Below are positions 1,674 through 26,200 of a stretch of 64,000 nt of DNA, piece by piece (position 1 is the first letter of the stretch; each line of letters opens with the position of its first letter). Origin of the DNA: Macrostomum lignano (lineage: Eukaryota); assembly GCA_002269645.1 (NCBI GenBank), contig NIVC01000621.1:310001-374000 (forward strand), read 5' to 3'. Under the pieces are notes generated by a model. The model was not told the DNA's origin. It saw nothing but the letters and a program-made list of their open reading frames with translations, and searched no databases. The position numbers were made by a program, and so were the translations under genes.

Positions 1674-4600
1674 TTACTTAACGATTATATTTTTGGTATG
1701 AACCAGGCCAGTAGCCTCATCAGCTCGGACTCCAGCAGCCTCATCAGCTCGGACTTCAGCAGCCTCATTAGCTCGGACTCCAGTAGCCTCACCAGCTCGG
1801 GCTCCAGTAGCCTCACCAGCTCGGACTCCAGTAGCCTCATCAGCTCGGACTCCAGCAGCCTCATCAGCTCGGACTCCAACTCCAGCAGCCTCATCAGCTC
1901 GGACTCCAGCAGCCTCATCAGCTCGGACTCCAGTAGCCTCATCAGCTCGGACTCCAGTAGCCTCACCAGCTCGGGCTCCAGCAGCCTCATCAGCTCGGAC
2001 TCCAGCAGCCTCATCAGCTCGGACTCCAGCAGCCTCATCAGCTCGGACTCCAGTAGCCTCACCAGCTCGGACTCCAGTAGCCTCACCAGCTCGGGCTCCA
2101 GCAGCCTCACCAGCTCGGGCTCCAGTAGCCTCATCAGCTCGGACTCCAGTAGCCTCACCAGCTCGGGCTCCAGCAGCCTCATCAGCTCGGACTCCAGCAG
2201 CCTCATCAGCTCGGACTCCAGTAGCCTCACCAGCTCGGGCTCCAGTAGCCTCACCAGCTCGGGCTCCAGCAGCCTCATCAGCTCGGACTCCAGCAGCCTC
2301 ATCAGCTCGAACTCCAGTAGCCTCACCAGCTCGGACTCCAGTAGCCTCACCAGCTCGGGCTCCAGTAGCCTCACCAGCTCGGACTCCAGTAGCCTCACCA
2401 GCTCGGACTCCATCAGAAAAGACGGCCCATGTCTCCTCAGCGAACTCCGCTGCCAGATGCGCCACGTCGTACGCCGTCCTTTGGCACTCTGCGCCTCCCG
2501 ACCAATCAGACTTCAGCTGCTGATTGAGCTCTTCCACCAGAATCTCAGTCGAGTGCTTCTCGTTGTTAACCAGATAGATCCAGCGGACAATCCAGCTGTC
2601 CTCACTTGACAGGATTCTGTGCTCACGACTCACCATGAAGTTGTAGATGTCTCTGGTGTCTCCCGATTGGTGAAAGTTCGGATCAATACGTTTGTGTTTC
2701 AGTTCTTCTAGCAGACATTTTCGCACGTTTTCAAGCGATGCAGCATCTCTGTTTTCCTTGAGCACCCTCATCAGTGAATCAAGCTCGAATGCCTTCCGCT
2801 CTGCTTCGGAACTCCGCTGGTTAAACTGCTTTTTATAGTTGCCTTCTAGCTGCTTCTTCAACTGGCCAAACGCGTGAGGGTATGAGAACTCTCGACTCGA
2901 TCCCTTAAGCCGAACTGCCAGAGATCGATCGAGGACCTCCTTTGCCTCCTTCAGCACCGAGACGGTCATGTTGTTCATTTCTTGAACTGCCCTTCCAGTC
3001 TCCTTCGTCTGCAGCTTCGTCAGTCGGAATCGATTCGATCTCATGAGGTTTCCGCGATCGCCGGCGCCTTCAGCTGACCGAGTCGAGCTCGCTTTGCTCG
3101 TTAGCTGATTGAGCTCCAAGAACTCGGCGATTCTGAACTTTACAGACTCAAAATGGCCCGAATCCGATTCAGTTTTAATAGAGAAGCTGCTGGGATCATC
3201 CAGAGTCAGTTCGATCTTAGCGCACAGCTCGTACAACTCTCGGCGGAAGAACATCGGGTCGCTTCTAGCTTGAGTTGGACTTGACTCATCCGCCATCACC
3301 CTTACGGCAGTTCGCTGATTGGACTTTTTACGCTCAATGATGTCAAGAATTCGAGGAGCAGCATCGCAACAGCCGCATTCAAGACACTCCATCAGCTTCA
3401 TCAAATCGGAGCCGGGGTCTCTGAGTAGCGACTCGGCCACCAGTGCCTGCTTGTTTTTGTGATCACTGGACAGTTTCCGAAAACTTGCAGAGGCCTCAGA
3501 AAATTCGCCATTCTTCATAAAATAGCAACCCAGATGCTCTAGAGCAAAATTGTTTTTGTCGTCTCGCCTCAGAGCCGTCCTGTAGAGGCCTAAGACATCC
3601 AGCTGAACTTTGAATGTCCCGATGTTGTCGGCGTACCAAGCCAGGTACTCTTCAAAGCCTTCATGCCTCTCATTCAGTTGTCGAAGAAATGTTTCCTTCT
3701 CGTTGGGCCATATATGGTCCAATGTTTCCTCAGTGTCAAAGGCAGCAACGCACGATTCTACAGCCTCCTTTGTTTCGCCAATCTTCATTAGGAACATGGC
3801 CTTGTGAAACTCTACTGTGGCGAAATTTTTGTTGTAGACTGAGAAAGTTTCTCTCAGAGAGTCGTATGCGTCTACGACTGTGTCTTTGTTCCATTGTTCT
3901 CGCTGAAGCTCTATGAGTTTCAACTCAATCCAGATGTGACCAGGCTCACCTGCCTTTGCCTTGCCCTCTTTAAGCAACCGAATCGCCTCCTCTCTATTAT
4001 TGGAGCTTAGAGCTTCTTTGGAAAGCTCAAGGAAGAATCCAGGATCAACAAATACGCTTGCCACTTCTTTAGCGTCTTCAAACAGTCGATTTCTGATGAC
4101 TTCTAAATTGTTTGAACTAGATTTTAGACACCGAAACACTTTAAGGCAAATAAGGTACGCGACTTTCGACAGCTCTTTCTTTTCCTCAGCCATTTCCAAT
4201 AGAAGATTGGCAGCCTTTTCAACCAAGCTTTGGCACAGACTGGAATCCTCGTTGTGCAGAATGGCTTCAACATAGTTTGCGTAGAATGTGGCCGTCGTGA
4301 GACCTTTCTTCTCACCGATGCCTTCGGCTCTTCTCCACAAGTCCAACTGAGCTTCGTCAGCGGGTTTATTCACCGTCTGTCTGTCGCAACGAGCTCTTAA
4401 ATAAGCTTCACCATAGAGCCAGTAGAAGTTGCACCCCTTGCTGTGCTCCAATAGGATACTTGACGCCTCGGCGAAGGCACTGACGCCAATGGCGTATTTC
4501 ATTGGACCGAAGCAACCGAAGGTGACTCCCTTCGCTGCAAACGCTCGAGCCTTGCTACTCGGGTCAGTCCAGAGCTCTTCCAGTCTCTGCATTTCTGTCT

Positions 4601-4991
4601 CGATTTCGTCCGGTGTTAGTGGCCGACTTTTTCCTTTGCTCAGCTGCTTGAGGTGCAGCATGTCGGCCCTGATTACGAACTCGCTTGATTTCGCTTGATT
4701 GGATATCCAATCAAATTGGATATCCATTGGATATCCATATCCAATGGATATGACTCGCTTGATTTCCAGCGCTTCAGTGAGATATTGCTTGGCCAAGTCG
4801 AACTTTTTGATTCGCTTGCGAGTGCACAGGTACGCCAGGGTTGCCAGGTAGGCGGCCTTTTTGTGAGGCTCCCGTTTTATCTTGTTCTCCGTCTTTTCGA
4901 TCACGTCATCGATGTTAGATTTTGTGCAGTTATCATCTGTCTTCCAGGTGAAGTGGCACTCTAGCTGGTCTAACGAGTTCAGGCTAGTCAT
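1674..4991 (-). CDS. IFIT-like tetratricopeptide-repeat protein (~1105 aa) with helical C-terminal domain and 8-aa repeat tail
   Basis: Uninterrupted ORF. N-terminal LDQLECHFTW matches the IFIT-family signature (LECHFTW); TPR-like helices follow (AAYLATLAYL, AFAAKGVTFGCFGPMKYAIGVSAFAEA, ALEHLGCYFMKNGEFSEASASF). Start taken at ATG 4991 because an acceptor (ttcctcag) near 5027 and a donor (gtaagt) near 5203 define a 5'UTR intron. Confidence 0.8.
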   Translation of the reverse strand: MTSLNSLDQLECHFTWKTDDNCTKSNIDDVIEKTENKIKREPHKKAAYLATLAYLCTRKRIKKFDLAKQYLTEALEIKRVISIGYGYPMDIQFDWISNQAKSSEFVIRADMLHLKQLSKGKSRPLTPDEIETEMQRLEELWTDPSSKARAFAAKGVTFGCFGPMKYAIGVSAFAEASSILLEHSKGCNFYWLYGEAYLRARCDRQTVNKPADEAQLDLWRRAEGIGEKKGLTTATFYANYVEAILHNEDSSLCQSLVEKAANLLLEMAEEKKELSKVAYLICLKVFRCLKSSSNNLEVIRNRLFEDAKEVASVFVDPGFFLELSKEALSSNNREEAIRLLKEGKAKAGEPGHIWIELKLIELQREQWNKDTVVDAYDSLRETFSVYNKNFATVEFHKAMFLMKIGETKEAVESCVAAFDTEETLDHIWPNEKETFLRQLNERHEGFEEYLAWYADNIGTFKVQLDVLGLYRTALRRDDKNNFALEHLGCYFMKNGEFSEASASFRKLSSDHKNKQALVAESLLRDPGSDLMKLMECLECGCCDAAPRILDIIERKKSNQRTAVRVMADESSPTQARSDPMFFRRELYELCAKIELTLDDPSSFSIKTESDSGHFESVKFRIAEFLELNQLTSKASSTRSAEGAGDRGNLMRSNRFRLTKLQTKETGRAVQEMNNMTVSVLKEAKEVLDRSLAVRLKGSSREFSYPHAFGQLKKQLEGNYKKQFNQRSSEAERKAFELDSLMRVLKENRDAASLENVRKCLLEELKHKRIDPNFHQSGDTRDIYNFMVSREHRILSSEDSWIVRWIYLVNNEKHSTEILVEELNQQLKSDWSGGAECQRTAYDVAHLAAEFAEETWAVFSDGVRAGEATGVRAGEATGARAGEATGVRAGEATGVRADEAAGVRADEAAGARAGEATGARAGEATGVRADEAAGVRADEAAGARAGEATGVRADEATGARAGEAAGARAGEATGVRAGEATGVRADEAAGVRADEAAGVRADEAAGARAGEATGVRADEATGVRADEAAGVRADEAAGVGVRADEAAGVRADEATGVRAGEATGARAGEATGVRANEAAEVRADEAAGVRADEATGLVHTKNIIVK
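1709..2411. repeat. 24-bp tandem repeat (~29 copies), in frame in the IFIT-like ORF (GVRADEAA/GARAGEAT)
   Basis: Unit CAGCAGCCTCATCAGCTCGGACTC with variants; open in several frames. Confidence 0.95.
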
Positions 4992-6006
4992 GGATACTTG
5001 GCGTTCAAGTTTTAGTTCCTTGTTGGCTGAGGAAAAAATCATAGCGTTTGCCTCCTTTACGAGCGAATATATTATATGACAGCTGAAGGTACTGCCTCAT
5101 TGTCGAAAATGAGACTTGTGCGCTCCCATTGCTCTGAGGTGAAAGGAGGGTATGAATGAGGGCACCAGAAAGTTCTATTTTGCCTACGATCAACTTGTAC
5201 TTACCAAATTATAGTATTGTACCAAGGACTGTACAGTTGCAGTGGAGTAGGCAAGGAAGGGATATATGGGGTGGATACGCGGGCCAGTAGGGCTGGCCCG
5301 CGGGAAGGAAATTTTCTCGCCCAAAAGGGAAGAGAAAGGCTACCCCCACCCCTGCTGGTCATCCAGCATGAATGTACGGGATGGAAAGCAGTTACAATTT
5401 TATTACTCACGTAAGAGGGAACACGAATCATGTTTATATTTAGATGGCCATGCCATTTTTAGCATCAGCTGCGCCGAAACTTCAGCCGATGAGAATTTTA
5501 GACTTTGTAAATTTCGACGGCATAATATTTGTTGGCAAGCCGGACATAGGCTTATCTTATAACGACGTGCGCATTTTTCGACGAAGATTTTTAGAAGAAG
5601 CCTTCGATCGTACATGCACGAGTTGTAGACTATCGGCAGTAGATACCGCGGGGAGCGATTTTACGTTACCGCCGCTAAACAATCACTTTCAGAACAATAT
5701 TTTTCACTTCCTCCATAATCCAAATCATTTTATCTGCATTATCCCCAATAAAGAAGTCGCAAAATTAACAAGGTTATTTTATCTCCAAAACTTCCCAACA
5801 TGCTACTTTCATTCACTACTTGCTGAATACTTTAAATATCCATTCTTCAATTTGCTGCCAAAAACCAGATCATAACAACTCTAAAAAATCAGCGCAGGGT
5901 CCCCGCCCTCCTAAAAATACTTTTAAGTTCCCAGTTATCTTATTTAGGTTCCTACTAAATTTAAGTTACCCATTGTAGATTGAATATGATTACATGTGAA
6001 GTATCG

Positions 6007-6797: not shown

Positions 6798-7921
6798 TTA
6801 AAACAGCATTCCTCCGCCAGACAGTTCCTGCCGTTTCGGCACCTCAACAAAGGAGAGCCAGTCGGATTCGAAGGTGGGCAGCAGGCCCATGCTGTTGCAC
6901 TTGTACAGAGCCAGCGCCAGAGCCGCCACATTGCCAAGCAGGTAGGCCAGCTTCTGAAGCGCTGCCTGCTCGCCTTCAATCATTGCGAACGTCGATTTGA
7001 TGGAGAACAGAGCTCGAACCGGCGACAGAAACATCATCACAACCATCATGATGGGGAAGATCGACAGCGAGTTGCCGGCCATCCACATTATAAAGATATT
7101 CATTGGCAACTGCCGCACCGGACCGAGGGCCACCTCCCAGCCGCGCTTGTTAATGAGGCTGGCCCCGTCGGTGGATTCTGGATGCTTGGCTGGAGCCTTC
7201 GGCGCGCAGTTGAGGGTTTTGAGGGATTAGATTGATGAAGACGAAATGAGGGAATTGGTCTCAGCTAACCAAGAGAACTTGATTAATAACAATGCTAATT
7301 GCAGGGCTATCAGCACCGTAGCCCACACAGGGGTGTGTGCAGCGACCCTGACTTTCTAATCGTCAGTAACAAAAAAAAAATTGATTACACCTGCTCCAAT
7401 TGGGTCAGATGTGCAACCGACAGCTCAGCCACAGCTACTGTGTGGCGCATTTGAAGGCTGCGTACGGCTGTTCAGTCCAAGGACTGGGGGGGGGGGGTCG
7501 CCACACACAGCCTCAATTACCCCAGCTAATGCTGGCACCCATTTTACAGCTGGGTGAACTGAAGCAATGCAGAGTTAAGTGTCTTGCTTAAGGACACAAA
7601 CTGTTCCGAGTGGGTCAAGAATCGAACCCCCGACCTTAGTTTTCAGCCGTGAGTCCTACGATCTAACCGACTCAAATATTATTCCATTAGTAACATTATG
7701 AGTGTTTACCTGAAATAACCCTTTGCAAGACTCACCTCGCGCTCAGAAAAGCCAGGCGGCTTTTCAAGCTGCTGCTGCTGCTGCGACAGCTGCTGAGAAG
7801 ACGAGGACGCGCCCGCCACTAACGAGGACTGGCAGCCCTGCCTGCGGATCGCCCAGCGCCGATGGCCGGCTGAGAGAACGGAAACGGCGCTCTCTGCGCC
7901 AGTTGAGGTTCGGCTTGACGA
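6798..7921 (-). CDS. EMC4: ER membrane protein complex subunit 4 (TMEM85); exons 7921-7736 and ~7196-6798; start codon not in these exons
   Basis: [36 protein letters not shown] and [17 protein letters not shown] match EMC4; upstream exon has HRRWAI...KPPGFS (EMC4 N-terminal motifs). Donor GAG|GTGAGT at 7735; acceptor TTCCAG|TCG at 7922. The exon-2 acceptor (AAG) is less certain. Confidence 0.88.
7405..7672 (-). mobile_element. tRNA-derived SINE, copy 2 (in EMC4 intron)
   Basis: High similarity to 6007-6277 over ~260 bp; B box retained, head more decayed. Confidence 0.8.
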
Positions 7922-8031
7922 CTGGAATATTTTTGTTTGACTGCTGTGAGCACACGGTGTTGAATCCGGATTGGGAATAGGCAGACACTTGGGGTTGGCG
8001 AGGAAAGTCAGGCGTGAAGCGGTGTTGAAGA

Positions 8032-9022
8032 TTGGGGTGGTGGGTGCTAGACATTGGGGTGGTGGGTGTTGAAATTGGGGTGGTGGGTGCTGAAGATTGG
8101 GGTGCTGGGCGATGAAATTGGGGTGGTGGGTGTTGAAGATTGGGGTGGTTGGTGTTGAAAACTGTGGTGGTGGGTGTTGAAATTGGGGTGGTTGGTGTTG
8201 AAGTTGGGGTGGTGGGTGTTGAAATTGGGGTGGTTGGTGCTGAAGATTGGGGTGGTTGGTGTTGAAAACTGTGGTGGTGGGTGTTGAAATTGGGGTGGTT
8301 GGTGTTGAAAACTGTGGTGGTGGGTGTTGAAATTGGGGTGGTTGGTGTTGAAGATTGGGGTGGTGGGTGTTGAAATTGGGTTGGTGGGTGTTGAAATTGG
8401 GGTGGTTGGTGCTGAAGATTGGGGTGGTTGGTGTTGAAAACTGTGGTGGTGGGTGTTGAAATTTGGGTGGCGGGTGTTGAAATTGGGGTGGTTGGTGTTG
8501 AAAACTGTGGTGGTGGGTGTTGAAATTGGGGTGGTTGGTGTTGAAGATTGGGGTGGTGGGTGTTGAAATTGGGTTGGTGGGTGTTGAAATTGGGGTGGTT
8601 GGTGCTGAAGATTGGGGTGGTTGGTGTTGAAAACTGTGGTGGGTGTTGAAATTGGGGTGGTTGGTGTTGAATTGGGGTGGTGGGTGTTGCAATTGGGGTG
8701 GTTGGTGCTGAAGATTGGGGTGGTTGGTGTTGAAATTGGGGTGGTTGGTGCTGAAGATTGGGGTGGTTGGTGTTGAAAACTGTGGTGGTGGGTGTTGAAA
8801 TTTGGGTGGTGGGTGTTGAAATTGGGGTGGGGGGTGTTGAAATTGGGGTGGTTGGTGCTGAAGATTGGGGTGGTTGGTGTTGAAAACTGTGGTGGTGGGT
8901 GTTGAAATTGGGGTGGTAGGTGTTGAAATTGGGGTGGTGGGTGTTGAAATTGGGGTGGTGGGTGCTGAAGATTGGGGTGCTGGGCGATGAAATTGGGGTG
9001 GTGGGTGTTGAAGATTGGGGTG
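8032..9022. repeat. G-rich 21-22-bp minisatellite between IARS1 and EMC4
   Basis: Units TGGTGGGTGTTGAAATTGGGG / TGGTTGGTGCTGAAGATTGGGG / TGGTTGGTGTTGAAAACTG. Confidence 0.95.
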
Positions 9023-9456
9023 GAGGATTATGAATATTATTTTCAAGAGTAGCAAATTAACTAATGAAGTAATTTTTTTTCAATCCACAATATCAGCCCG
9101 TGTAGGTATCCGTGTTTTATTAATTGAGCATGGTAAACAGAACAGAAGAAAACTATCGCAGTGTGTCTAACAATTCAAGGTTAGTGCCTATATATTTTTT
9201 CCTAGGAAGTTATTGAATTGGCATAGATTTTTCTTCTACCATACTGAAATTTTTGTTAAATATCGTTTGGTCAGTTGTCATTAATGATATATCAATTATT
9301 GACTGCAGAATTATCAGCTGATAACCCCAGGTACCGCAGGTTTAGACACAGCAAACAGAAACAGGAAGGGTGTCTGAATACGCTAATATCTTGTCTGTCT
9401 TCGAATATTATTGGCGCCAGAAACGCAGTTGATTTCAATTTATTGCAAGCTGTCAA

Positions 9457-12256
9457 TCATCTCAAGCTGACGTAGACGGTCTTTTGTCCCAACTCTTCAG
9501 CGGAGTCACAGGTGTGAGCGTTGAGCAGCGTCTTCAGCTCGGCGTCGCGGTAGAGGCGAACCTCTTGACCCGATTCGATAAGATTAAAGAGAACCTCCAC
9601 CTGCGGGGCCGGATTTGAGTACATTTGGAAATAGATTGTGCATATTTGGAAGGGGATTGTGTGTATTTGGTATGGGATTGTGTACATTTGGAATGGGATT
9701 GTGTACATTTGGAATGGGATTGTGTGTATTTGGTATGTGATTGTGTACATTTGGAAATAGATTGTGCATATTTGGAAGGGGATTGTGTGTATTTGGTATG
9801 GGATTGTGTGTATTTGGTATGGGATTGTGTACATTTGGAATGGGATTGTGCATATTTGGAAGGGGATTGTGTGTATTTGGTATGGGATTGTGTACATTTG
9901 GAATGGGATTGTGTACATTTGGAATGGGATTGTGTGTATTTGGAATGGGATTGTGTACATTTGGAATGGGATTGTGTGTATTTGGAATGGGATTGTGTAC
10001 ATTTGGAATGGGATTGTGTACATTTGGAATGGGATTGTGTGTATTTGGTATGGGATTGTGTACATTTGGAATGGGATTGTGTGTATTTGGAATGGGATTG
10101 TGTGTATTTGGTATGGGATTGTGTGTATTTGGTATGGGATTGTGTACATTTGGAATGGGATTGTGTGTATTTGGTATGGGATTGTGTGTATTTGGTATGT
10201 GATTGTGTACATTTGGAATGGGATTGCGTGTATTTGGTATGGGATTGTGTGTATTTGGTATGGGATTGTGTACATTTGGAATGGGATTGTGTGTATTTGG
10301 AAGGGGATTGTGTGTATTTGGAAGGGGATTGTGTGTATTTGGTATGGGATTGTGTGTATTTGGTATGGGATTGTGTACATTTGGAAATAGATTGTGCATA
10401 TTTGGAAGGGGATTGTGTGTATTTGGTATGGGATTGTGTACATTTGGAATGGGATTGTGTGTATTTGGAAGGGGATTGTGTGTATTTGGTATGGGATTGT
10501 GTACATTTGGAATGGGATTGTGTGTATTTGGTATGGGATTGTGTGTATTTGGTATGGGATTGTGTACATTTGGAATGGGATTGTGTGTATTTGGAAGGGG
10601 ATTGTGTGTATTTGGTATGGGATTGTGTACATTTGGAATGGGATTGTGTGTATTTGGAATGGGATTGCGTGTATTTGGTATGGGATTGTGTGTATTTGGT
10701 ATGGGATTGTGTACATTTGGAATGGGATTGTGTGTATTTGGAAGGGGATTGTGTGTATTTGGTATGGGATTGTGTACATTTGGAATGGGATTGTGTGTAT
10801 TTGGAATGGGATTGTGTGTATTTGGAAGGGGATTGTGTATATTTGGTATGGGATTGTGTATATTTGGTAGGGGATTGTGTATATTTGGTATGGGATTGTG
10901 TAAGTTCGGAATGGGATTATGTATATTTTGGATTGGATTGTTTACAATTGGAATGGTTTGCGTACATTTATGTACAATACTTAGAGATTGTACATGTAAA
11001 TGTACACTTAGTGTCTGAGTTATAGATGTACTTTATGAGAGGTGAAATGCACTTTAAGCACCTCTTTCAACAGCCGGTTCATGCTGATCAGAGACCCATC
11101 AGCAGGATTGCGCAGTTTCAACACGCGCTCCTCTTGTCCGAAGCGCAGACGAACTTCATCTTTGCTTCCAGCAGACGATGACGGAATTTTGCCAGACTGC
11201 TTCTGCTGTTGTTGGGCAGAATTGTCACCAGAAGCCGTAGAAAATACCCAAAGATCCAGGGAGCCGGAGTCCTTGATCTTGCACTGCTCGTGCGCCATCG
11301 CCTGCTGCAGGTTGACCTGGAAGGCAATTTTTTGGAAGTCAAACAAATTAACTTTCGATACATATCGCCAGTAGAATATTTAGGTAGTCAAGAGTCTTTC
11401 AATATCACATTTCCTGCACTAAAGCTCCAATTTGGCGCCACAAATGAGACTATGGCGCTAACTGAGCGCAACAAATGAGACTTTGGCGCTAATTGAGCGC
11501 CACAAATGAGACTTTGGAGCCAACTGAGCGCCAAAAATGAGACTATGGCGCCAATGGAGCGCCACAAATGAGACTTTGGCGCTAATTGAGCGCTACAGAG
11601 GACACTTTAGCGCCAGTTTAGCACCACAAAAGAAAACCTTGCGCGAAGTTAGCGCCACAGATCTAACTTTAGCGCCAAACTAGCGTCACACACAAGATTT
11701 TAACGCCAATTTAGCGCTACAGATGAAACTTCAGCGCTAATTTAGCACCGCAGTCAGAAAAGATGACCACCCATTTTACTAGAGAATGCAATTGACAGGT
11801 TCTTCCTTATCTGTCTAAAACTTGTGATGACATTTCTATATATCGTAGAGATACCTGACCAGCCTCCTCGAGCGCCACCAACGGCTGTCGCACAGTGTCG
11901 TAGATGAACTCGGCGTACTCGCGCACAACTCCGCTCAAGCCGCCGTCGCCGTCGGCGCGATAGAAAATTTTAATCGGATCGCTGGGCTGCAGGCCGGCAC
12001 GCTTGCGCAGCTTCTGCACCCGGTTCACCACCTCGCGGGCCAGGCCCTCCCGCTGCATGCTCGCGTCTGGGGTGATGTCCAGCAGCACTAGCAGGTTCAG
12101 CGACTGGTCCACGTGGCAGTCCAAGCTGCTGCCGCCGCCGGAGCCGCCGCTGTCGTCGCTGTCAGCTCGGAGGGAGACTGACATCTCGGCTGGGGATTGG
12201 GGATGTCAGGGCTAAGTGTCTGTCGGTCTGTCTGTCTGTCTGCGTGTCTGTCTTCC

Positions 12257-18500: not shown

Positions 18501-21500
18501 TAGTTTCTGCAACTCAGGTGACGAAACCGCTGAGCATTTCGTCAGCATCTGTCCCGCCTTCACGCGGGCCAGACTCACTTACCTCGGGCCACACACATCT
18601 ATTACTGAAGCGTGTAAACCCGAAAACTTTAATCAGCTCATGCGCTACCTTCGGGCCACCCGCAGGGCTGAACTCTCCTTTCCAGAGAGCACCATAGCTG
18701 CTGGCGACACTGGGGGACCTCCCTGGGCGGCGCCAACCCTCCGTCCATAGCGACGCGTCGGCCGTTCAGGGACTAGCGGAATGGGCGCCCGCGCCTTCCC
18801 GCTGTGTCCCCTCCGGGACAGCCCTGCAGCTAAGTAAGTAAGTAAGTACTATGACTAAAACTCTATGACCACAATGACTAAAACTCTATGACCACAATTA
18901 CTACACATATATGACCACAATGACTAAAACTCTACGACTACTATGACTACAACTCTATTATGAGCAGACATCACCTCCAGTATGTAGGACTCCATAGACT
19001 GCACAGCCTGCAGCACTCGGTCATCGTTGTGCACCACGATCACCCGGCTAAGCGGGTACTTAATCGGTAAGGTGTTCCGGTCGCGCACGATACGACCAGA
19101 CGAGATGACGGACTGCATGTGAGAAACGCAAAATTCAATCTCATCGTCAATAGCGGACTCGCTGAAAATTAGAATTAACAAATCATGCATGTAGAGTATT
19201 AAGGATCAGAATCTATTGTTACATCAAAAATACAGAAACTTAAAAATATAAGGTATGGGTTTAGAAACTACAGAATCGAATCTGCAGATTACCAACATTG
19301 GGGATCAGGAACTAAACGATTTGAATCACAAAATTGGGGATCAGTAACTAAGGGATTCGAATCCTAAAGTTGGGGATCAGGGGTCAAAGAATCAAATCGC
19401 CAAATTGGGGATCAGGAGTCAAAGAAGCAAATCCCCAAATTAGGGATCAAGAGTCAAAGAAACAAATCCCAAAATTGGGGATCAGGAGTCAAAGAATCAA
19501 ATCCCGAAATTGGGGATCAGGAGTCAAAGAATCAAATCCCAAAATTGGGGATCAGGAGTCAAAGAATCAAATCCCTAAATTGGGGATCAGGAGTCAAAGA
19601 ATCAAATCCCAAAATTGGGGATCAGGAGTCAAAGAATCAACTCCCAAAATTGGGGATCAGGAGTCAAAGAATCAACTCCCTAAATTGAGGATCTGGAGTC
19701 AAAGAATCAAATCCCAAAATTGGGGATCAGGAGTCAAAGAATCAAATCCCAAAATTGGGGATCAGGAGTCAAAGAATCAAATCCCAAAATTGGGGATCAT
19801 AAGCCAAAGAATCAAATCCCAAAATTGGGGATCAGGAGTCAAAGAATCAAATCCCAAAGTTGGGGATCATGAGTCAAAGAATCAAATCCCAAAATTGGGG
19901 ATCAGGAGTCAAAGAATCAACTCCCAAAATTGGGGATCAGGAGTCAAAGAATCAAATCCCGAAATTAGGGATCAAGAGTCAAAGAAACAAATTCCTAAAT
20001 TGGGGAACAGGAGTCAAAGAATCAAATCCCAAAATTGGGGATCATGAGTCAAAGAATCAAATCCCAAAATTGGGGATCAGGAGTCAAAGAATCAAATCCC
20101 AAAATTGGGGATCAGGAGTCAAAGAATCAAATCCCTAAATTGGGGATCAGGAGTCAAAGAATCAACTCCCAAAATTGGGGATCAGGAGTCAAAGAATCAA
20201 ATCCCAAAATTGGGGATCAGGAGTCAAAGAATCAACTCCCTAAATTGAGGATCTGGAGCAAAGAATCAAATCCCAAAATTGGGGATCAGGAGTCAAAGAA
20301 TCAAATCCCAAAGTTGGGGATCAGGAGTCAAAGAATCAAATCCCGAAATTGGGGATCAGGAGTCAAAGAATCAAATCCCAAAATTGGGGATCAGGAGTCA
20401 AAGAATCAAATCCCAAAATTGGGGATCAGGAGTCAAAGAATCAACTCCCTAAATTGAGGATCTGGAGCAAAGAATCAAATCCCAAAAGTTGGGGATGGTA
20501 CTAGCTCTGACTTTAAATCCCAATCTTAATAACCATAACAAGTCATGATCCCAGGAGCAGAGTTTACTCACTCGGCGCAGGGCAGCGCTAGGAAGTGCAC
20601 ACTGGCGGCCTCTTCATCTGGCTGCTTGTCCAAGAAGGTGATCAATCGCTGGTAGAAGAACTCGGCAGTGAATGGGACAAACGGAGCGAGCAGACAGGAC
20701 AGCTCGAACAGCACGTAGAACAGCGAGTTCAATGCCGCAGGCTCCGCGTCGCGCAGTCGCTTCCGATTCATTCGAATGTACCAGTTGGTCAGGTTGTCCA
20801 CAAACGACACGAGCCGCGGCAGTACCGTGTACAGCCTGTAGGCGGCCATCTCTTCGCGTACGTAACGAACCACGGACTGCGAATAGGACAGGATCCACTT
20901 ATCCATGACGTTGTCGGAGTCCGGGTGACCGCCGCCGCCGGCGCCTGCGACGCTGCCAGGTTGTTTGAAGTCGGCCCGACTGCCGGCGCATTGGTCGAAG
21001 AATCTCAACGAATTGTACAGCGGCAGGAAGACGTCCTTGACAACGTCCTTGACGCCGGACTCGTTGAATCGGAGATTCTCGGCGCGAACAACTGGGGAAT
21101 TGATGAGGTAGAGGCGGAGAGCGTCCGCGCCGTGCGACTCCACCACTTTCATTGGGTCGGGGTAGTTCTTCTTGCGCTTCGACATCTTCTGACCGTCGGA
21201 GGCTGCGGAAAATGTCGGAGTCGAGTGGGCATGATTGTTAGGTAGGGCTTTAGTCAAAAACTAATGGAACTGTTGAAACCTCTTAGACTGAAGCTGGCTG
21301 CTGGGACACTGGGATAAGACGAAAACTCGGACAAGGACAGAACTAAAAACGGGGACTCAAACTGGGACTAAAACGGGGACTCAAACGGGACTCAAACTGG
21401 GACTATAACGGGGACTCAAACTGGGATTAAAACGGGGACTCAAACTGGGACTAAAAACAGGACTCAAACTGGGACTAAAAACAGGACTCAAACTGAGACT

Positions 21501-22348
21501 GAAACAATACTCAAAAAGGGCCTTAAACGGGGACTCAAACTGGGACTAAAACGGGGACTCAAACTGGGACTAAAACCGGGACTCAAACTGGGACTAAAAC
21601 CGGGACTCAAACTGGGACTAAAAACAGGACTCAAACTGGGACTAAAAACAGGACTCAAACTGAGACTGAAACAAGACTCAAAAAGGGCCTTAAACGGGAC
21701 TCAAACTGGGACTTGAAACGGGACTCAAACGGGACTCCAACTGGGACTTGAAACGGGACTCAAACAGGGACTCAAACTTGGACCAAGACTGGACTTAAAT
21801 TAAGACTGAAACAAGACTCAAAAAGGGCCTAAAACAGGACTCGAACTGGGACTCAAATCGCGATTCAACATGGGACTAAAAATGGGACTCAAACTGGGAC
21901 TAAATACGGGACTCAAACTGAAACAAAAAAACGCTGGCTCATTCCATTACCCAGCACGATTCCATTGACAATCAGATTGCGAAACGGCGGCTTGCCGAAC
22001 AGGGCAGTGGAGATGACCAGCAGAGTGTAGAACCAGCCCCTGGTCTGGTCGATACCCTCGGCAATGAAGTCGGCCGGGAACGCGTCTTCGAAGTCCTTAG
22101 CCCGCTCGAACGGGTAGTGGCTCTGGGCGTAGGGCATGCTGCCGGACTCGAACCAGCAGTCGAACACTTCCGGGATGCGACGGAGCGGGCCTTTGCCCAG
22201 CTTGGACGGAATCTCGATGTTGTCTACGCTCTCTCGGTGCAGGTCCGTCACTCGGACGCCGGACAGCTCAGCCAGCTGGTCAATGGAGCCGACGCAGACC
22301 ACCTGAGGAGGGGACAGTTGTTAACTATTCTAGCCTGTCTGTCTGTCC

Positions 22349-22384
<36 letters not shown>

Positions 22385-22385
22385 A

Positions 22386-22444
<59 letters not shown>

Positions 22445-22465
22445 GTCTGTCTGTCTGTCTGTCTA

Positions 22466-22525
<60 letters not shown>

Positions 22526-22912
22526 CCTGCCTATCTGTCTGTGCATCTTAGTGTCTGCCCGCCTTTGTGTCTGTGTATCGGCATGCTTGTGTCTTAGTGT
22601 CTGTGGGTCTGCGTCATTATTATTTCATCATTTCTCTGTATTTCCACCGCAACAGTGACAAACCTCTTCGCCGTCCTCGCTAACCCACAGCGGCATGGGG
22701 GTGCCCCAGTAGCGGTTTCGAGAGATGGCCCAGTCGCGTGCACCAGCGAGCCAATTAGCGAATCGCTTTTCCTGAACATATTTCGGCACCTGCGGTTGGG
22801 TGATGACAATAGAGAGCTTTTGATAATTCAGCAATAAAAAATTACACTAGCGCTCTCACTGGACTGATATAAAAGTACATAGAGCATACACATATTGACG
22901 GACAGACAGATG

Positions 22913-22974
<62 letters not shown>

Positions 22975-23183
22975 CAGACAGACGCAGGCAGACAGACAAA
23001 CAGACAGACAGAAAGACAGACAGACAGACAGTCAGACAGACAGACAGACAAACAGACAGACGGAGGCAGGCAGGCAGACAGACAGACAGACAGACGCAGG
23101 CAGGCAGGCAGACAGACAAACAGACAGACAGAAAGACAGACAGACAGACAGTCAGACAGACAGACAGACAGACGCAGGCAGGC

Positions 23184-23234
<51 letters not shown>

Positions 23235-26200
23235 TGCAGGCAGACAGGCAGACACACACACAGACAGGCAGGCAGACAGACAGACAGACTGTCAGACAGA
23301 CAGACAAATTAAACAGAACGCTCCCACTAACCCAATAACTCTTCTGGTTATTATCCAACAGCTGCTGGCCGATGTCTTCAACGCGAACGAACCAGCTGGG
23401 CACGGCTTTATAGATAAGCGGCGTGTCGGAGCGCCAGCAGAACGGGTAGTTGTGCCCGATGCTGGAATGATTGACCAATCGGCCATTTTTCTTTAGCAAA
23501 TCGCAAATGTTCTTGTCGGCCTCTTTCACGTGCTGACCGTGAAAGTCTGGCACCTCGTCGGTGAACTTGCCGCTGGCGTCAACTGGGCAGACTAATTTGC
23601 TATCCCTGGCGATGATGCCGTACTTCAGGCACACTCGGTAGTCGTCCTCGCCGTGGTAAGGCGCCTGGTGGACAATGCCTGTACCGCTGTCATCCGTGAC
23701 GTACGTGTCGCACAGGACCCGGAAAGCGCCTCTTTCGGCTTTCAAATGTTGAAAATACGGCAGCAAAGGCTTGTAGGTTTTGCCTTCCAACTGGCTGCCT
23801 GGAAACTGTTCCAACAGTTCGTAGGCTCCCGTGTCTTCCGGTTTGTACAGAGCGCACAGACGTGCCTCCATCATGATGTAAACGGAGCCGGTCTTGGCGT
23901 CGCGTACCCGGACGTATTTCATCTCGGGATGGACGCACAGAGCCAAGTTGCTAGGCAAAGTCCATGGCGTGGTAGTCCATGCTAGCAAAGCTACGCCTGG
24001 CTCATTGTCCAAAGGAAACGACACCACAATGGCGGGATCGTCAACCATTTTGTAGTTTTGACCGGCTTCAAAATTTGACAATGGCGTACTACAAGCCGTA
24101 CTAAATGGCATCACTTTGACGCCGCGGTAAACCAGGCCCTTGTGGTAGAGCTGGCTAAATACCCACCAGACGCTCTCCATGAAGCTGGGGTACATGGTTT
24201 TGTAATCGTTCTCGAAGTCTATCCATCGACCGATGCGTTTGACGATGCGCTAAATTTAGGGGGGGGGGGGGCAAGGTGAATTTAACTGTTTTCTACCGTC
24301 TATGCTGCTCTATCTACCTGTTTTCTACCGTTTATGCTGCTCTATCTACCTGTTTTCTACCGTTTATGCTGCTCTATCTACCTGTTTTCTACCGTCTATG
24401 CTGCTCTATCTACCTGTTTTCTACCGTCTATGCTGCTCTATCTACCTGCTTTCTACCGTCTATGCTGCTCTATCTACCTGTTTTCTATCAATTATATGCT
24501 GCTCTATCTACCTGTTTTCTACCGCCTATGCTGCTCTATCTACCTGTTTTTTACCGTCTATGCTGCTCTATCTACCTGTTTTCTACAGCCTATGCTGCTC
24601 TATCTACCTGTTTTCTACTGTCTATGCTGCTCTATCTACCTGTTTTCTACAGCCTATGCTGCTCTATCTGCTTGTTTTCTACCGTTTATGCTGCTCTATC
24701 TACCTGTTTTCTACCGTCTATGCTGCTCTATCTACTTGTTTTCTACCGTCTATACTGCTCTATCTACGAGTACCTGTTTTCTACCGCCTATGCTGCTCTA
24801 TCTACCTGTTTTCTATCAATTATATGCTGCTCTATCTACCTGTTTTCTACCGTCTATGCTGCTCTATCTACCTGTTTTCTATCAATTATATGCTGCTCTA
24901 TCTACCTGTTTTCTACCGTCTATACTGCTCTATCTACGAGTACCTGTTTTCTACCGCCTATGCTGCTCTATTTACCTGTTTTCTACCGTCTATGCTGCTC
25001 TATTTACCTGTTTTCTACCGTCTATGCTGCTCTATCTACCTGTTTTCTACCGTCTATGCTGCTCTATCTACCTGTTTTCTACCGTCTATACTGCTCTATC
25101 TACGAGTACCTGTTTTCTACCGCCTATGCTGCTCTATCTACCTGTTTTCTACCGTCTATGCTGCTTTATCTACCTTTTTTCTACCGTCTATGCTGCTCTA
25201 TCTACCTGTTTTCTACAGCCTATGCTGCTCTATCTACCTGTTTTCTACCGTCTATACTGCTCTATCTACCTGTTTTCTACCGTCTATGCTGCTCTATCTA
25301 CCTGTTTTCTATCAATTATATGCTGCTCTATCTACCTGTTTTCTACCGTCTATGCTGCTCTATCTACCTGTTTTCTACCGTTTATGCTGCTCTATTTACC
25401 TGTTTTCTACCGTCTATACTGCTCTATCTACGAGTACCTGTTTTCTACCGCCTATGCTGCTCTATCTACCTGTTTTCTACCGTCTATGCTGCTCTATCTA
25501 CCTGTTTTCTACCGTCTATGCTGCTCTATCTACCTGTTTTCTATCTTCTATGCTGCTCTATCTACCTGTTTTCTACCGTCTATGCTGCTCTATCTACCTG
25601 TTTTCTACCGTCTATACTGCTCTATCTACCTGTTTTCTACCGTCTATGCTGCTCTATCTACCTGTTTTCTATCTACTATGCTGCTCTAATTTAACTCTTT
25701 TCTACAGTTTATGATGCTACATCTACCTGTTTTCTACCATTCGATACCTAAGCTACCCTTTTTCGATCGTCTGATTTTTTAACCTGACTAATTTCACTAA
25801 TAGAAAATAGCGGCATTAGCTCACCTCCCATTCGGAGCAGTACCTAGTAACAATGGCCCTGCACTGATCATTATAGGCTTTGATGCCCATCTTTTCAATA
25901 TCCTGAGGCCCTGTAATGCCAAGCGACTTATCAATCTCGTATTCCACCGGCAGGCCGTGGCAATCCCAGCCGAATCGACGTTCCACATAGTGCCCAGTCT
26001 GGTGGGCCCATCGAGTCACAATGTCCTTGATAGTGCCAGCCAGTATGTGGCCATAGTGCGGCAATCCAGTAGCAAATGGCGGACCATCGTAGAACGTGTA
26101 GCGCTTCTTACCCTTAGACTGGGCCAAGCTAGTTTTAAATGCGTCAATTTTAGACCAGAATTCTAGCACGCGTTCCTCCATCTCCGGGAAATTGATGCTG

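Follow-up and report, generated by a model that had tools for sequence, protein, structure and literature searches.

The window, i.e. the whole 64,000-nucleotide stretch of Macrostomum lignano DNA that was analysed, carries on its minus strand a gene read as one unbroken open reading frame (1674..5042, 1122 aa). Two in-frame ATG codons could open it, and the start at 4991 is likelier than the one at 5042, since the Met at 4991 (MTSLNSLDQLECHFTW) agrees with the starts of the two closest paralogues, P0001 and P0002. P0001 is annotated in Macrostomum lignano as one uninterrupted CDS, and the gene studied here, itself intact and with a single exon, belongs to a multi-copy family, the M. lignano locus tags of which are unmentioned in the literature. 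Its features, with residues numbered from Met 4991, are the following:

1674..4991, minus strand: probable complete single-exon CDS of 1105 codons, Met at 4989-4991, stop at 1674-1676
5040-5042, minus strand: in-frame upstream ATG, an alternative start giving 17 additional residues
4944..4964, minus strand: LECHFTW, the IFIT N-terminal signature, residues 10-16
4446..4979, minus strand: N-terminal subdomain, residues 5-182, whose homology to IFITs is supported by hhalign to P0037 and by PDB profile matches
3312..4445, minus strand: TPR-like alpha-solenoid, residues ~183-560, with no significant IFIT alignment
2415..3275, minus strand: conserved C-terminal region, predicted to be all-helical, residues 573-859, four conserved modules with variable linkers
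2415..2666, minus strand: autonomous core of the apparently new domain, residues 776-859, ~90 aa, four predicted helices
2619..2627, minus strand: R789-E790-H791, the RE[HY] motif (R in 25/27 sequences, E in 26/27, H in 19/27 with Y/F in 6)
2553..2567, minus strand: N809-N-E-K812-H813, the family motif N-x-x-K-H (N, K and H each in 25/27)
2436..2471, minus strand: Y841-D-V-A-H845-L-A-A-E849-F-A-E852, the last helix (Y in 25/27, H in 25/27, E849 in 26/27, E852 in 27/27)
1677..2414, minus strand: repeat tail GVRA[GD]EA[AT] x ~29, a 24-bp minisatellite in frame

The original prediction had ended the reading frame at 2415, which is wrong, the repeat reading on in frame to the stop at 1674-1676. 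The minisatellite itself spans 1708-2412 with a period of 24, 29.1 copies and 92% matches (TRF); because every one of its frames is open, translation of the tail does not follow from the reading frame by itself. P0001 has a similar repeat tail enclosed in its annotated CDS.

Concerning the N-terminus, the predicted IFIT signature is indeed encoded at 4944-4964. LECHFTW corresponds to IFIT5 residues 16-22, identical at 7 of 7 positions within a co-linear 160-residue profile alignment (HMMER), and most full-length family members keep it as [LV]EC[HP]F.W. A profile of 8 diverse members searched against the PDB matches IFIT5 at E 5.6e-5, IFIT1 at 0.0073 and IFIT3 at 0.39, another PDB profile search places IFIT5 at E 1.8e-5, and these three are the only natural PDB proteins that family profiles match co-linearly from the N-terminus, CHFTW onward. 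It should be noted that the IFITs are reached by profiles, single-sequence phmmer against PDB sequences giving designed TPR proteins only. In a collection of 5.8 billion proteins the sole match of the N-terminal profile is a shark 'IFIT5-like' protein, P0037, with which hhalign yields a probability of 96.7-97.0% (query 4-166 / 5-182, target 11-171). These results show the N-terminus to be homologous, though distantly, to subdomain I of the vertebrate IFITs.

The extent of this similarity is limited. When the full-length family profile is used, hhalign aligns only residues 5-182 to the shark protein, the ~390 further residues of the TPR part yield no IFIT alignment, and the second stretch that HMMER places on IFIT5 amounts to one generic TPR. 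The RNA-contact residues of IFIT5 include E33, T37, Q41 and K150, as known from binding data (PMC9677429); in the family profile they correspond to K, V, T and C, mapped by eye on a remote alignment, and the shark protein, again aligned by eye, is also without E33/T37/Q41. The predicted IFIT-like nature of the protein is supported for the first ~170 residues only, by the profiles and the 97% hhalign probability. No ISRE-like GAAANNGAAA lies within 7 kb of the gene, and the whole window holds 3 matches vs 4.7 expected by chance.

The solenoid that follows shows consensus-TPR matches at E 8.4e-10, and AlphaFold models it as helical hairpins, residues 210-520 reaching a pLDDT of about 80-90. For the first 190 residues the model has a pLDDT <55, too low to read the geometry of an IFIT-type RNA-binding clamp from it. 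The top Foldseek matches of the solenoid model are all TPR proteins, among which IFIT5 is only 8th, yet has the best TM-scores (0.39/0.45). A TPR solenoid and then a helical C-terminal part had been foreseen, and both are upheld.

The C-terminal part was characterized with a HMMER scan covering 1.84 billion representative proteins (threshold E<=1e-3), in which 25 proteins carry the region, many of them matching profile positions 6-285. Its motifs come in the order originally described, LKEAKEVLDRSL, FSYP, IYNF and WIVRWIYLVNNEKH, while its size had been underestimated at ~190 aa: the conserved non-TPR region covers about 285 aa (2415-3275) and its core ~90 aa (2415-2666). Between its modules the region accommodates long inserts of variable sequence. 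Helices are predicted throughout, with low confidence; an AlphaFold model of the tail obtained from 3 sequences (pLDDT 38.6, pTM 0.22) is too poor to judge the fold, and Foldseek on that model gives a best E of 1.6 and TM-scores <=0.2. The tail did not arise by divergence from the TPRs of the same protein, to judge by the hhalign comparison of the two regions (0.17%).

The core is the sole part kept in short or divergent members (profile positions ~190-285). In the core alignment, W800, W804 and E852 are invariant and 12 more positions are >=90% conserved; nine of the conserved residues are polar or charged, within ~65 positions. Y841, H845, E849 and E852 are spaced 4, 4 and 3 residues apart, and would thus form one polar face of the last helix. 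NNEKH lies exactly where it was predicted, at 2553-2567, and the conservation check proposed for N..KH shows it kept in 25 of 27 homologues, so that its loss, one of the two outcomes named beforehand as refuting, did not occur. Both LECHFTW and NNEKH are beyond chance, given the 7/7 match to IFIT5 in a co-linear alignment and the presence of N-x-x-K-H in 25/27. The nearest resemblances of the core, none of them significant, are to helical repeat proteins, with importin-alpha ARM repeats around 'EAAW' at E 0.27. A hemerythrin match (NCBIfam, E 0.043) concerns a single member and does not recur when 23 cores are compared with Pfam; it is treated as chance, the H...HxxxE pattern giving at most a speculative link. 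Searches for the core motif in viral contigs and JGI metagenome contigs gave no relatives. Judged by sequence, the core domain appears to be previously undescribed, matching no described family in the databases searched.

The family comprises about 25 proteins, known only from Macrostomum lignano and the ENA assemblies ERZ25074608 and ERZ26859043, both of which are eukaryotic and more AT-rich; in word-indexed searches the core and N-terminal profiles recovered hardly any proteins. The core is also found free-standing, in proteins of 96-153 aa, is duplicated in P0004, and in P0025 and P0033 adjoins regions that UniRef names C3H1-type zinc fingers, whereas P0002 and P0018 present RGG-type repeats after the domain. 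CCCH fingers and RGG repeats are typical partners in RNA-binding proteins. The C-terminal domain is under purifying selection, with a dN/dS of 0.34 over the C-terminal region and of 0.14 within the core. Between paralogues, divergence is far greater in the TPR part than in the tail, and the close match of the tail to that of P0001 partly reflects recent shared ancestry, not constraint, since pS against this paralogue is 0.20 in the tail vs 0.77 in the TPR part. The paralogues are clustered among retroelements; clustered paralogues together with a fast-evolving part are common in conflict-related gene families.

The tail had originally been described as possibly HEPN-like. HEPN domains have as hallmark the motif Rx4-6H, with a polar residue (N, D or H) usually right after the Arg (PMC3710099), and a divergent HEPN RNase would carry [V/D]-N-x-x-K-H as a degenerate R-N-x-x-x-H and perform metal-free cleavage of IFIT-captured RNA. 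Consistent with such an enzyme are the all-helical prediction for the tail, the Asn found 4 residues before the His in 25/27 sequences, where HEPN families are usually polar (a two-residue coincidence, weak alone), the existence of accepted HEPN families that lack the Arg and keep the His, e.g. Parep1/8, and the animal precedent of TPR-HEPN fusions in the DZIP3 family (PMC3710099). However, position 5 before the conserved His, the HEPN Arg site, is V (10), D (11), I (3), Q, G or H and never R/K in the 27 sequences, Rx4-6H is absent family-wide, and throughout the 285-aa region there is no conserved Arg 4-6 residues before H791, H813, H845 or any conserved His. Neither is a conserved upstream Ex3[KR] seen across the family in alignments judged by eye: E-V-L-D-R occurs in LKEAKEVLDRSL here, its Glu column is variable, and the L and D of 'aLD' are conserved, also by eye. 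HEPN models in Pfam, PADLOC, NCBIfam and PDB sequences give no match with E limits mostly up to 10, those of Pfam giving none for three Macrostomum tails or 23 cores although E values as high as 10 were admitted, and the 1.84 billion protein scan returned neither prokaryotic nor known HEPN relatives. The HEPN reading is thus very unlikely. A still poorer candidate comes from the UniRef name of P0001, which would make the mid-tail a DUF1722 (YbgA/RudS-type) tRNA-binding domain. In RudS, DUF1722 is a helical domain that binds the anticodon arm of tRNA (PMC11417400), and Pfam PF08349 does match residues 661-746 from Met 4991 (678-763 from the ATG at 5042), with 27.7 bits in P0001, above the cut-off of 22.5, and 21.7 bits, below it, in the window protein. 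The match is, however, missing in P0002 and nine more distant members, it falls on helices rich in Lys and Glu that lie outside the conserved core, and a 12-sequence family profile compared with E. coli YbgA gives 0.07% in hhalign, which leaves this identity close to refuted.

The explanation that we tentatively favour is a single-chain fusion of an IFIT-like sensor with a new domain, either an effector or a ligand binder. Such a chain would be built from an IFIT subdomain I homologue of ~170 aa, LECHFTW onward, a ~380-aa TPR-like solenoid, a ~285-aa helical region ending in the core R-E-(H)...W...W...N-x-x-K-H...Y-D-x-A-H-x-A-A-E-F-A-E, and a repeat-encoded low-complexity tail. The IFIT-like/TPR part would hold the ligand, which is probably some feature of RNA such as one of its ends, and the core could supply a His/Lys/Glu/Arg site for acting on this ligand or for binding it with specificity. 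For the protein we infer RNA binding, catalysis and a role against viruses or transposons, and the broader idea of a sensor joined to an effector-like domain is plausible. Several observations speak against it: the IFIT similarity ends after ~170 residues, the RNA-contact residues of IFIT5 are not kept, no enzyme family in Pfam, PADLOC, NCBIfam or PDB sequences matches the tail, no ISRE-like element is near the gene, and the weak importin-alpha ARM resemblance of EAAW...W...N (E 0.27) would fit a non-catalytic helical repeat. In a somewhat unlikely alternative, the tail is a non-catalytic helical module, be it a further RNA-binding surface, a lid of the TPR channel or an oligomerisation/adaptor element, and the protein sequesters RNA or partners as IFITs do, with no cutting. 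To our knowledge vertebrate IFITs act without an enzymatic domain, and this alternative would also accommodate the helical repeats as nearest, non-significant resemblances, the tolerance to long inserts, and the CCCH and RGG partners, which serve in binding and have no enzymatic nature. A set of nine polar or charged residues conserved in ~65 positions, including the Y/H/E/E stripe, would nevertheless be unusual for a scaffold; moreover, hhalign does not relate the module to the protein's own TPR region, and its core occurs as a free-standing small protein. Decidedly more doubtful is a non-immune function, that of a lineage-specific RNA-metabolism or structural protein, e.g. one of germline or stem cells, merely sharing an old TPR ancestor with IFITs. 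The absence of an ISRE-like element near the gene, the unconserved IFIT5 ligand contacts and the confinement of homology to ~170 residues would all agree with it, but copy-number expansion, paralogue clusters and a fast-evolving TPR part are more typical of conflict genes, and for the N-terminus no relatives other than the antiviral IFITs are detectable. The sensor fusion that we favour also has a bolder form, according to which pre-vertebrate, pre-interferon IFIT-type RNA sensors were joined in flatworm-like animals to a new enzymatic core working on captured RNA, constituting a non-HEPN antiviral/anti-transposon effector class whose core is also free-standing; in this full extent it is unlikely.

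IFITs are reported to be restricted to jawed vertebrates, with an origin placed alongside interferon (PMC3688568), and beyond a negative 2013 survey the literature describes no invertebrate IFIT-like genes. A recognisably IFIT-like N-terminus in a flatworm would push back the origin of this RNA-sensing module and separate it from interferon. The tail domain has no Pfam model and no solved relative, and its residue pattern resembles that of an enzyme; should it turn out to be an effector, it would be a new domain for the animal innate-immunity toolkit. The protein would also offer a simple system in which to study sense-and-act proteins, since RNAi is used in Macrostomum lignano, a lab model. 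If the tail merely binds, the results still provide a useful annotation of an orphan family labelled 'hypothetical' or, misleadingly, 'DUF1722'.

Compared with known systems, the protein comes closest to vertebrate IFITs, proteins of ~470-490 aa with subdomains I-III. IFIT5, IFIT1 and IFIT3 (PDB 3ZGQ/4HOQ, 4HOU/5UDI and 9MK9) have in common with it the L-x-x-L-E-C-H-F-T-W signature and a co-linear subdomain of ~160-170 residues (hhalign 97%, PDB profile E 5.6e-5), followed in both cases by an all-helical TPR solenoid, for which IFIT5 gives the best Foldseek TM-scores. Demonstrable homology covers no more than the first ~170 residues, though, the flatworm TPR part is ~100 residues longer, and E33, T37, Q41 and K150 of IFIT5 are unmatched in the flatworm family. 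The flatworm protein has, in addition, the 285-aa conserved C-terminal region and the repeat tail, and its gene consists of a single exon with no ISRE nearby, whereas IFIT genes usually have two exons (PMC3688568). DUF1722 (YbgA), which forms the C-terminal domain of the RudS tRNA 4-thiouridine desulfidase, is likewise helical, and among the three closest Macrostomum paralogues it has a weak Pfam match that passes the cut-off in P0001 only; it is, however, bacterial, lacks a family-level match and does not overlap the conserved core. Animal DZIP3/hRUL138-type TPR-HEPN proteins and RNase L (ankyrin sensor plus KEN/HEPN RNase) differ from the present family, which gives no HEPN profile match and has no Rx4-6H. 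They nonetheless follow the same logic of a repeat module and then a helical C-terminal domain and, as in the present family, the DZIP3/hRUL138 type displays lineage-specific expansions in invertebrates (PMC3710099).

The window protein joins an IFIT-homologous N-terminus and a TPR solenoid to a helical domain that is autonomous and strongly conserved. It is encoded, by ORF reading of the window, in a single unbroken ORF of 1122 aa on the minus strand (1674..5042). Residues are numbered from the Met at 4991 (MTSLNSLDQLECHFTW), since both closest relatives, the Macrostomum lignano paralogues P0001 and P0002, begin at this position. The following elements are distinguished.

4944-4964, minus strand: LECHFTW, from sequence reading
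2415-3275, minus strand: C-terminal region or tail, residues 573-859
2415-2666, minus strand: core, the last ~90 residues of the tail
1708-2412: minisatellite, 24-bp unit, 29 copies

Of the original prediction of an IFIT-like sensor fused to a possible HEPN-like domain, the observation is borne out, including the position of the NNEKH motif (2553-2567), and the interpretation is supported in part. It took 2415 as its end point, which is where the 24-bp minisatellite starts, and the ORF continues in frame through about 29 repeats of GVRA[GD]EA[AT] to the stop at 1674. As the annotated single-exon CDS of P0001 includes the same kind of repeat tail, that of the window protein is probably translated; the minisatellite is open in all frames, and an open ORF alone is no proof of translation. 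A 28-bp near-palindromic tandem duplication within the CDS (4698-4751; ATTGGATATCCAATCAAATTGGATATCC, 1.9 copies) coincides with a window-specific insertion (..ISIGYGYPMDIQFDW..) absent from the paralogues, and produces a self-match on the reverse strand in tblastn.

Concerning the N-terminus, a single-sequence search of PDB sequences returned designed TPR proteins only. A three-sequence N-terminal profile retrieved IFIT5 from the same set with an E of 1.8e-5 (profile 7-181 against chain 13-181), and an eight-sequence profile of diverse members retrieved IFIT5 (5.6e-5), IFIT1 (0.0073 and 0.06) and IFIT3 (0.39), with no other natural protein among PDB sequences aligned from the N-terminus. The latter profile has one match in a collection of 5.8 billion proteins, a basking-shark protein named IFIT5-like at NCBI (E 0.052), to which hhalign relates the family with 96.7-97.0% probability and an E of about 1e-10 (residues 4-182 against 11-171). 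These profile matches, the hhalign score and the pattern [LV]-E-C-[HP]-F-x-W, present in most full-length members, show homology to IFIT subdomain I for the N-terminal ~170 residues. Beyond them IFIT similarity ends in the hhalign comparison. In IFIT5, E33, T37, Q41 and K150 are important for binding 5'-ppp RNA (PMC9677429); in a remote HMMER alignment mapped by eye they correspond to K, V, T and C of the family profile, which makes a residue-by-residue inference of RNA-end recognition impossible. The equivalents of E33, T37 and Q41, aligned by eye, are also changed in the shark protein. The IFIT-like assignment thus stands for the first ~170 residues and fails for full-length co-linearity and the contact residues, and for these two reasons the window protein, as judged from its sequence, is not a canonical IFIT.

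A TPR-like solenoid follows the N-terminal subdomain, as had been claimed, and is backed by consensus-TPR matches down to E 8.4e-10, by the helices of an AlphaFold model (pLDDT about 80-90 across residues 210-520) and by Foldseek, whose neighbours are generic TPR proteins; IFIT5 ranks eighth among them, yet with the best TM-scores (0.39/0.45). Between solenoid and tail, residues ~533-554 (approx. 3330-3395) form a conserved Cys-containing stretch, ECLECGC.DA.P.IL, which reads ECLELGNCDVI in distant members. Only part of the Cys residues is conserved, so that a zinc site here is doubtful.

Family-wide, the C-terminal region has four conserved modules, and between them lie variable linkers in which insertions can reach a few hundred residues.

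Module 1: LFFSR..YE.CA.IE...
Module 2: VL.EAR.ALD.C...YPHAF
Module 3: ..IE.LL.EAF
Module 4: the core, ~90 residues

The core alone is shared by every member, down to proteins of 96-153 aa, of which at least four are paralogues of ~133 aa. Within it W800, W804 and E852 (window numbering) are invariant, and R789, E790, N809, K812, H813, Y841, H845 and E849 each occur in at least 25 of 27 sequences; N809, K812 and H813 make up the N..KH whose conservation among homologues was in question. Y841, H845, E849 and E852 follow one another at intervals of 4, 4 and 3 residues, a spacing that puts all four on the same side of the last helix. In P0025 and P0033 (Macrostomum lignano) the core precedes regions designated C3H1-type zinc fingers by UniRef, and RGG-type repeats lie downstream of the domain in P0002 and P0018. 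P0025 and P0033 carry the core without the IFIT-like part, followed by repeated Cys-rich units ending C..FAHG..EL; P0033 has no Pfam match at E<=0.01. The 570-aa ENA protein P0004 contains the entire C-terminal region twice in tandem, as nearly identical copies in one ORF.

Searching 5.8 billion proteins by word index returned only 2 relatives, both from Macrostomum lignano (61% and 51% identity). HMMER, run with the C-terminal region over all of 1.84 billion cluster representatives, yielded 25 proteins at E<=1e-3. These come from Macrostomum lignano and from contigs of ENA assemblies (ERZ25074608 and ERZ26859043 for the members that could be placed); viral and JGI metagenome contigs contained no relative. 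The G+C of the ENA loci is 36-38%, against 44% in the window and 50% at the Macrostomum lignano P0001 locus, and hence they are assigned to other organisms. Two additional family copies, one of them partial, flank P0001 on contig NIVC01000347.1 (L004), and the ENA loci are likewise clustered, amid retroelements. In ctg185430 of ERZ25074608 (L001), family members cluster within 12 kb beside a retrotransposon: a full-length gene of 869 aa, an ORF of 698 aa with the TPR part only, and two ORFs of 96 aa that encode the core alone. These short ORFs could be genes in their own right or fragments of interrupted ones. The neighbours of the window gene are a non-LTR retrotransposon, isoleucyl-tRNA synthetase exons and numerous minisatellites.

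L004:195-2707, minus strand, and L004:19072-19879, plus strand: family copies flanking P0001
13673-18750, plus strand: non-LTR retrotransposon, 1246-aa ORF with endonuclease (Exo_endo_phos), reverse transcriptase and RNase H domains
20568-21257 and 23152-24195, minus strand: class I aminoacyl-tRNA synthetase, two exons, tRNA-synt_1 and Anticodon_1 matches
220-439, 7706-9055, 9457-11025, 19370-20047 and 24276-25714: large minisatellite arrays

The synthetase (20568-24195) is isoleucyl-type from its motifs, and its exons confirm the window as nuclear DNA of a eukaryote. A 290-aa ORF upstream of the 1246-aa one has no Pfam match. The arrays account for long spurious ORFs, spread over several frames of either strand, and for a GC skew that is extreme at 8-10 kb (0.67).

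Window gene compared with the P0001 gene (L004:10001-12766), Nei-Gojobori method
TPR part: pS 0.77 (saturated), pN 0.32
C-terminal region: pS 0.20, pN 0.077, dN/dS 0.34
Core: pS 0.24, pN 0.04, dN/dS 0.14

Purifying selection acts on the core. The two genes have a mosaic ancestry, their halves differing in age of shared ancestry, and therefore constraint explains only part of the greater protein identity seen in the tail (84%, against 52% in the TPR part). Saturated pS in the TPR part and low pS in the tail suggest gene conversion or exon-scale recombination among paralogues. The family is multi-copy and clustered, with a TPR part diverged to saturation and a tail that is conserved and exchanged between paralogues.

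HEPN domains are defined by Rx4-6H, usually with a polar residue following the Arg, and a four-helix core, often with an upstream Ex3[KR] (PMC3710099). The N-x-x-K-H of the family resembles this in having an Asn four residues ahead of the conserved His, but where HEPN has its Arg the family has V, D, I, Q, G or H, with a basic residue in 0/27 sequences; none of the conserved His residues of the tail is preceded by a conserved Arg at a distance of 4-6 residues in the family alignment; and the sole Ex3R of the window protein is, by eye, not conserved. Pfam HEPN models match none of three tails, 23 cores and nine full-length members, and PADLOC, NCBIfam and PDB sequences give no HEPN match either. 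A tail model built by AlphaFold from three sequences only has a pLDDT of 38.6, and at this low confidence Foldseek returned no useful match (best E 1.6). The predicted HEPN membership is thus unsupported, a HEPN-like fold with a non-canonical site being very unlikely, and on sequence grounds this is not a demonstrable HEPN protein. DUF1722, the Pfam match from which P0001 takes its UniRef name, can hardly be entertained for the middle of the tail: it is under the Pfam cut-off in the window protein, missing in P0002 and nine other members, and hhalign gives the family 0.07% against E. coli YbgA; we take it for a chance likeness of Lys/Glu-rich helices. Nor does the tail represent diverged TPRs of the window protein (hhalign 0.17%). 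No described relatives of the tail domain were found.

The description that fits best is an IFIT-like TPR protein with an undescribed domain. By analogy with IFITs, and because CCCH and RGG elements accompany the new domain, the TPR part would bind RNA, and the conserved polar residues of the core (His, Lys, Glu and Arg) would make up a putative site acting on, or specifically binding, the TPR-held ligand. Such a sensor-plus-effector protein we propose tentatively, at somewhat under an even chance. The tail could instead be a non-catalytic binding or adaptor module, a possible but rather unlikely reading, with which the best, non-significant likenesses of the core (designed helical repeats and the importin-alpha ARM 'EAAW...N' helix) are consistent; a non-immune role of the family appears improbable.

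[quoted passage not shown] Unlike IFIT genes, the window gene has neither the usual two-exon structure in its CDS nor an ISRE-like element nearby. Fusions of a repeat sensor with HEPN already exist in animals, of the DZIP3 type (PMC3710099), so that the sensor-fusion architecture has precedent; what is new is the tail domain itself and the IFIT-type N-terminus outside vertebrates.
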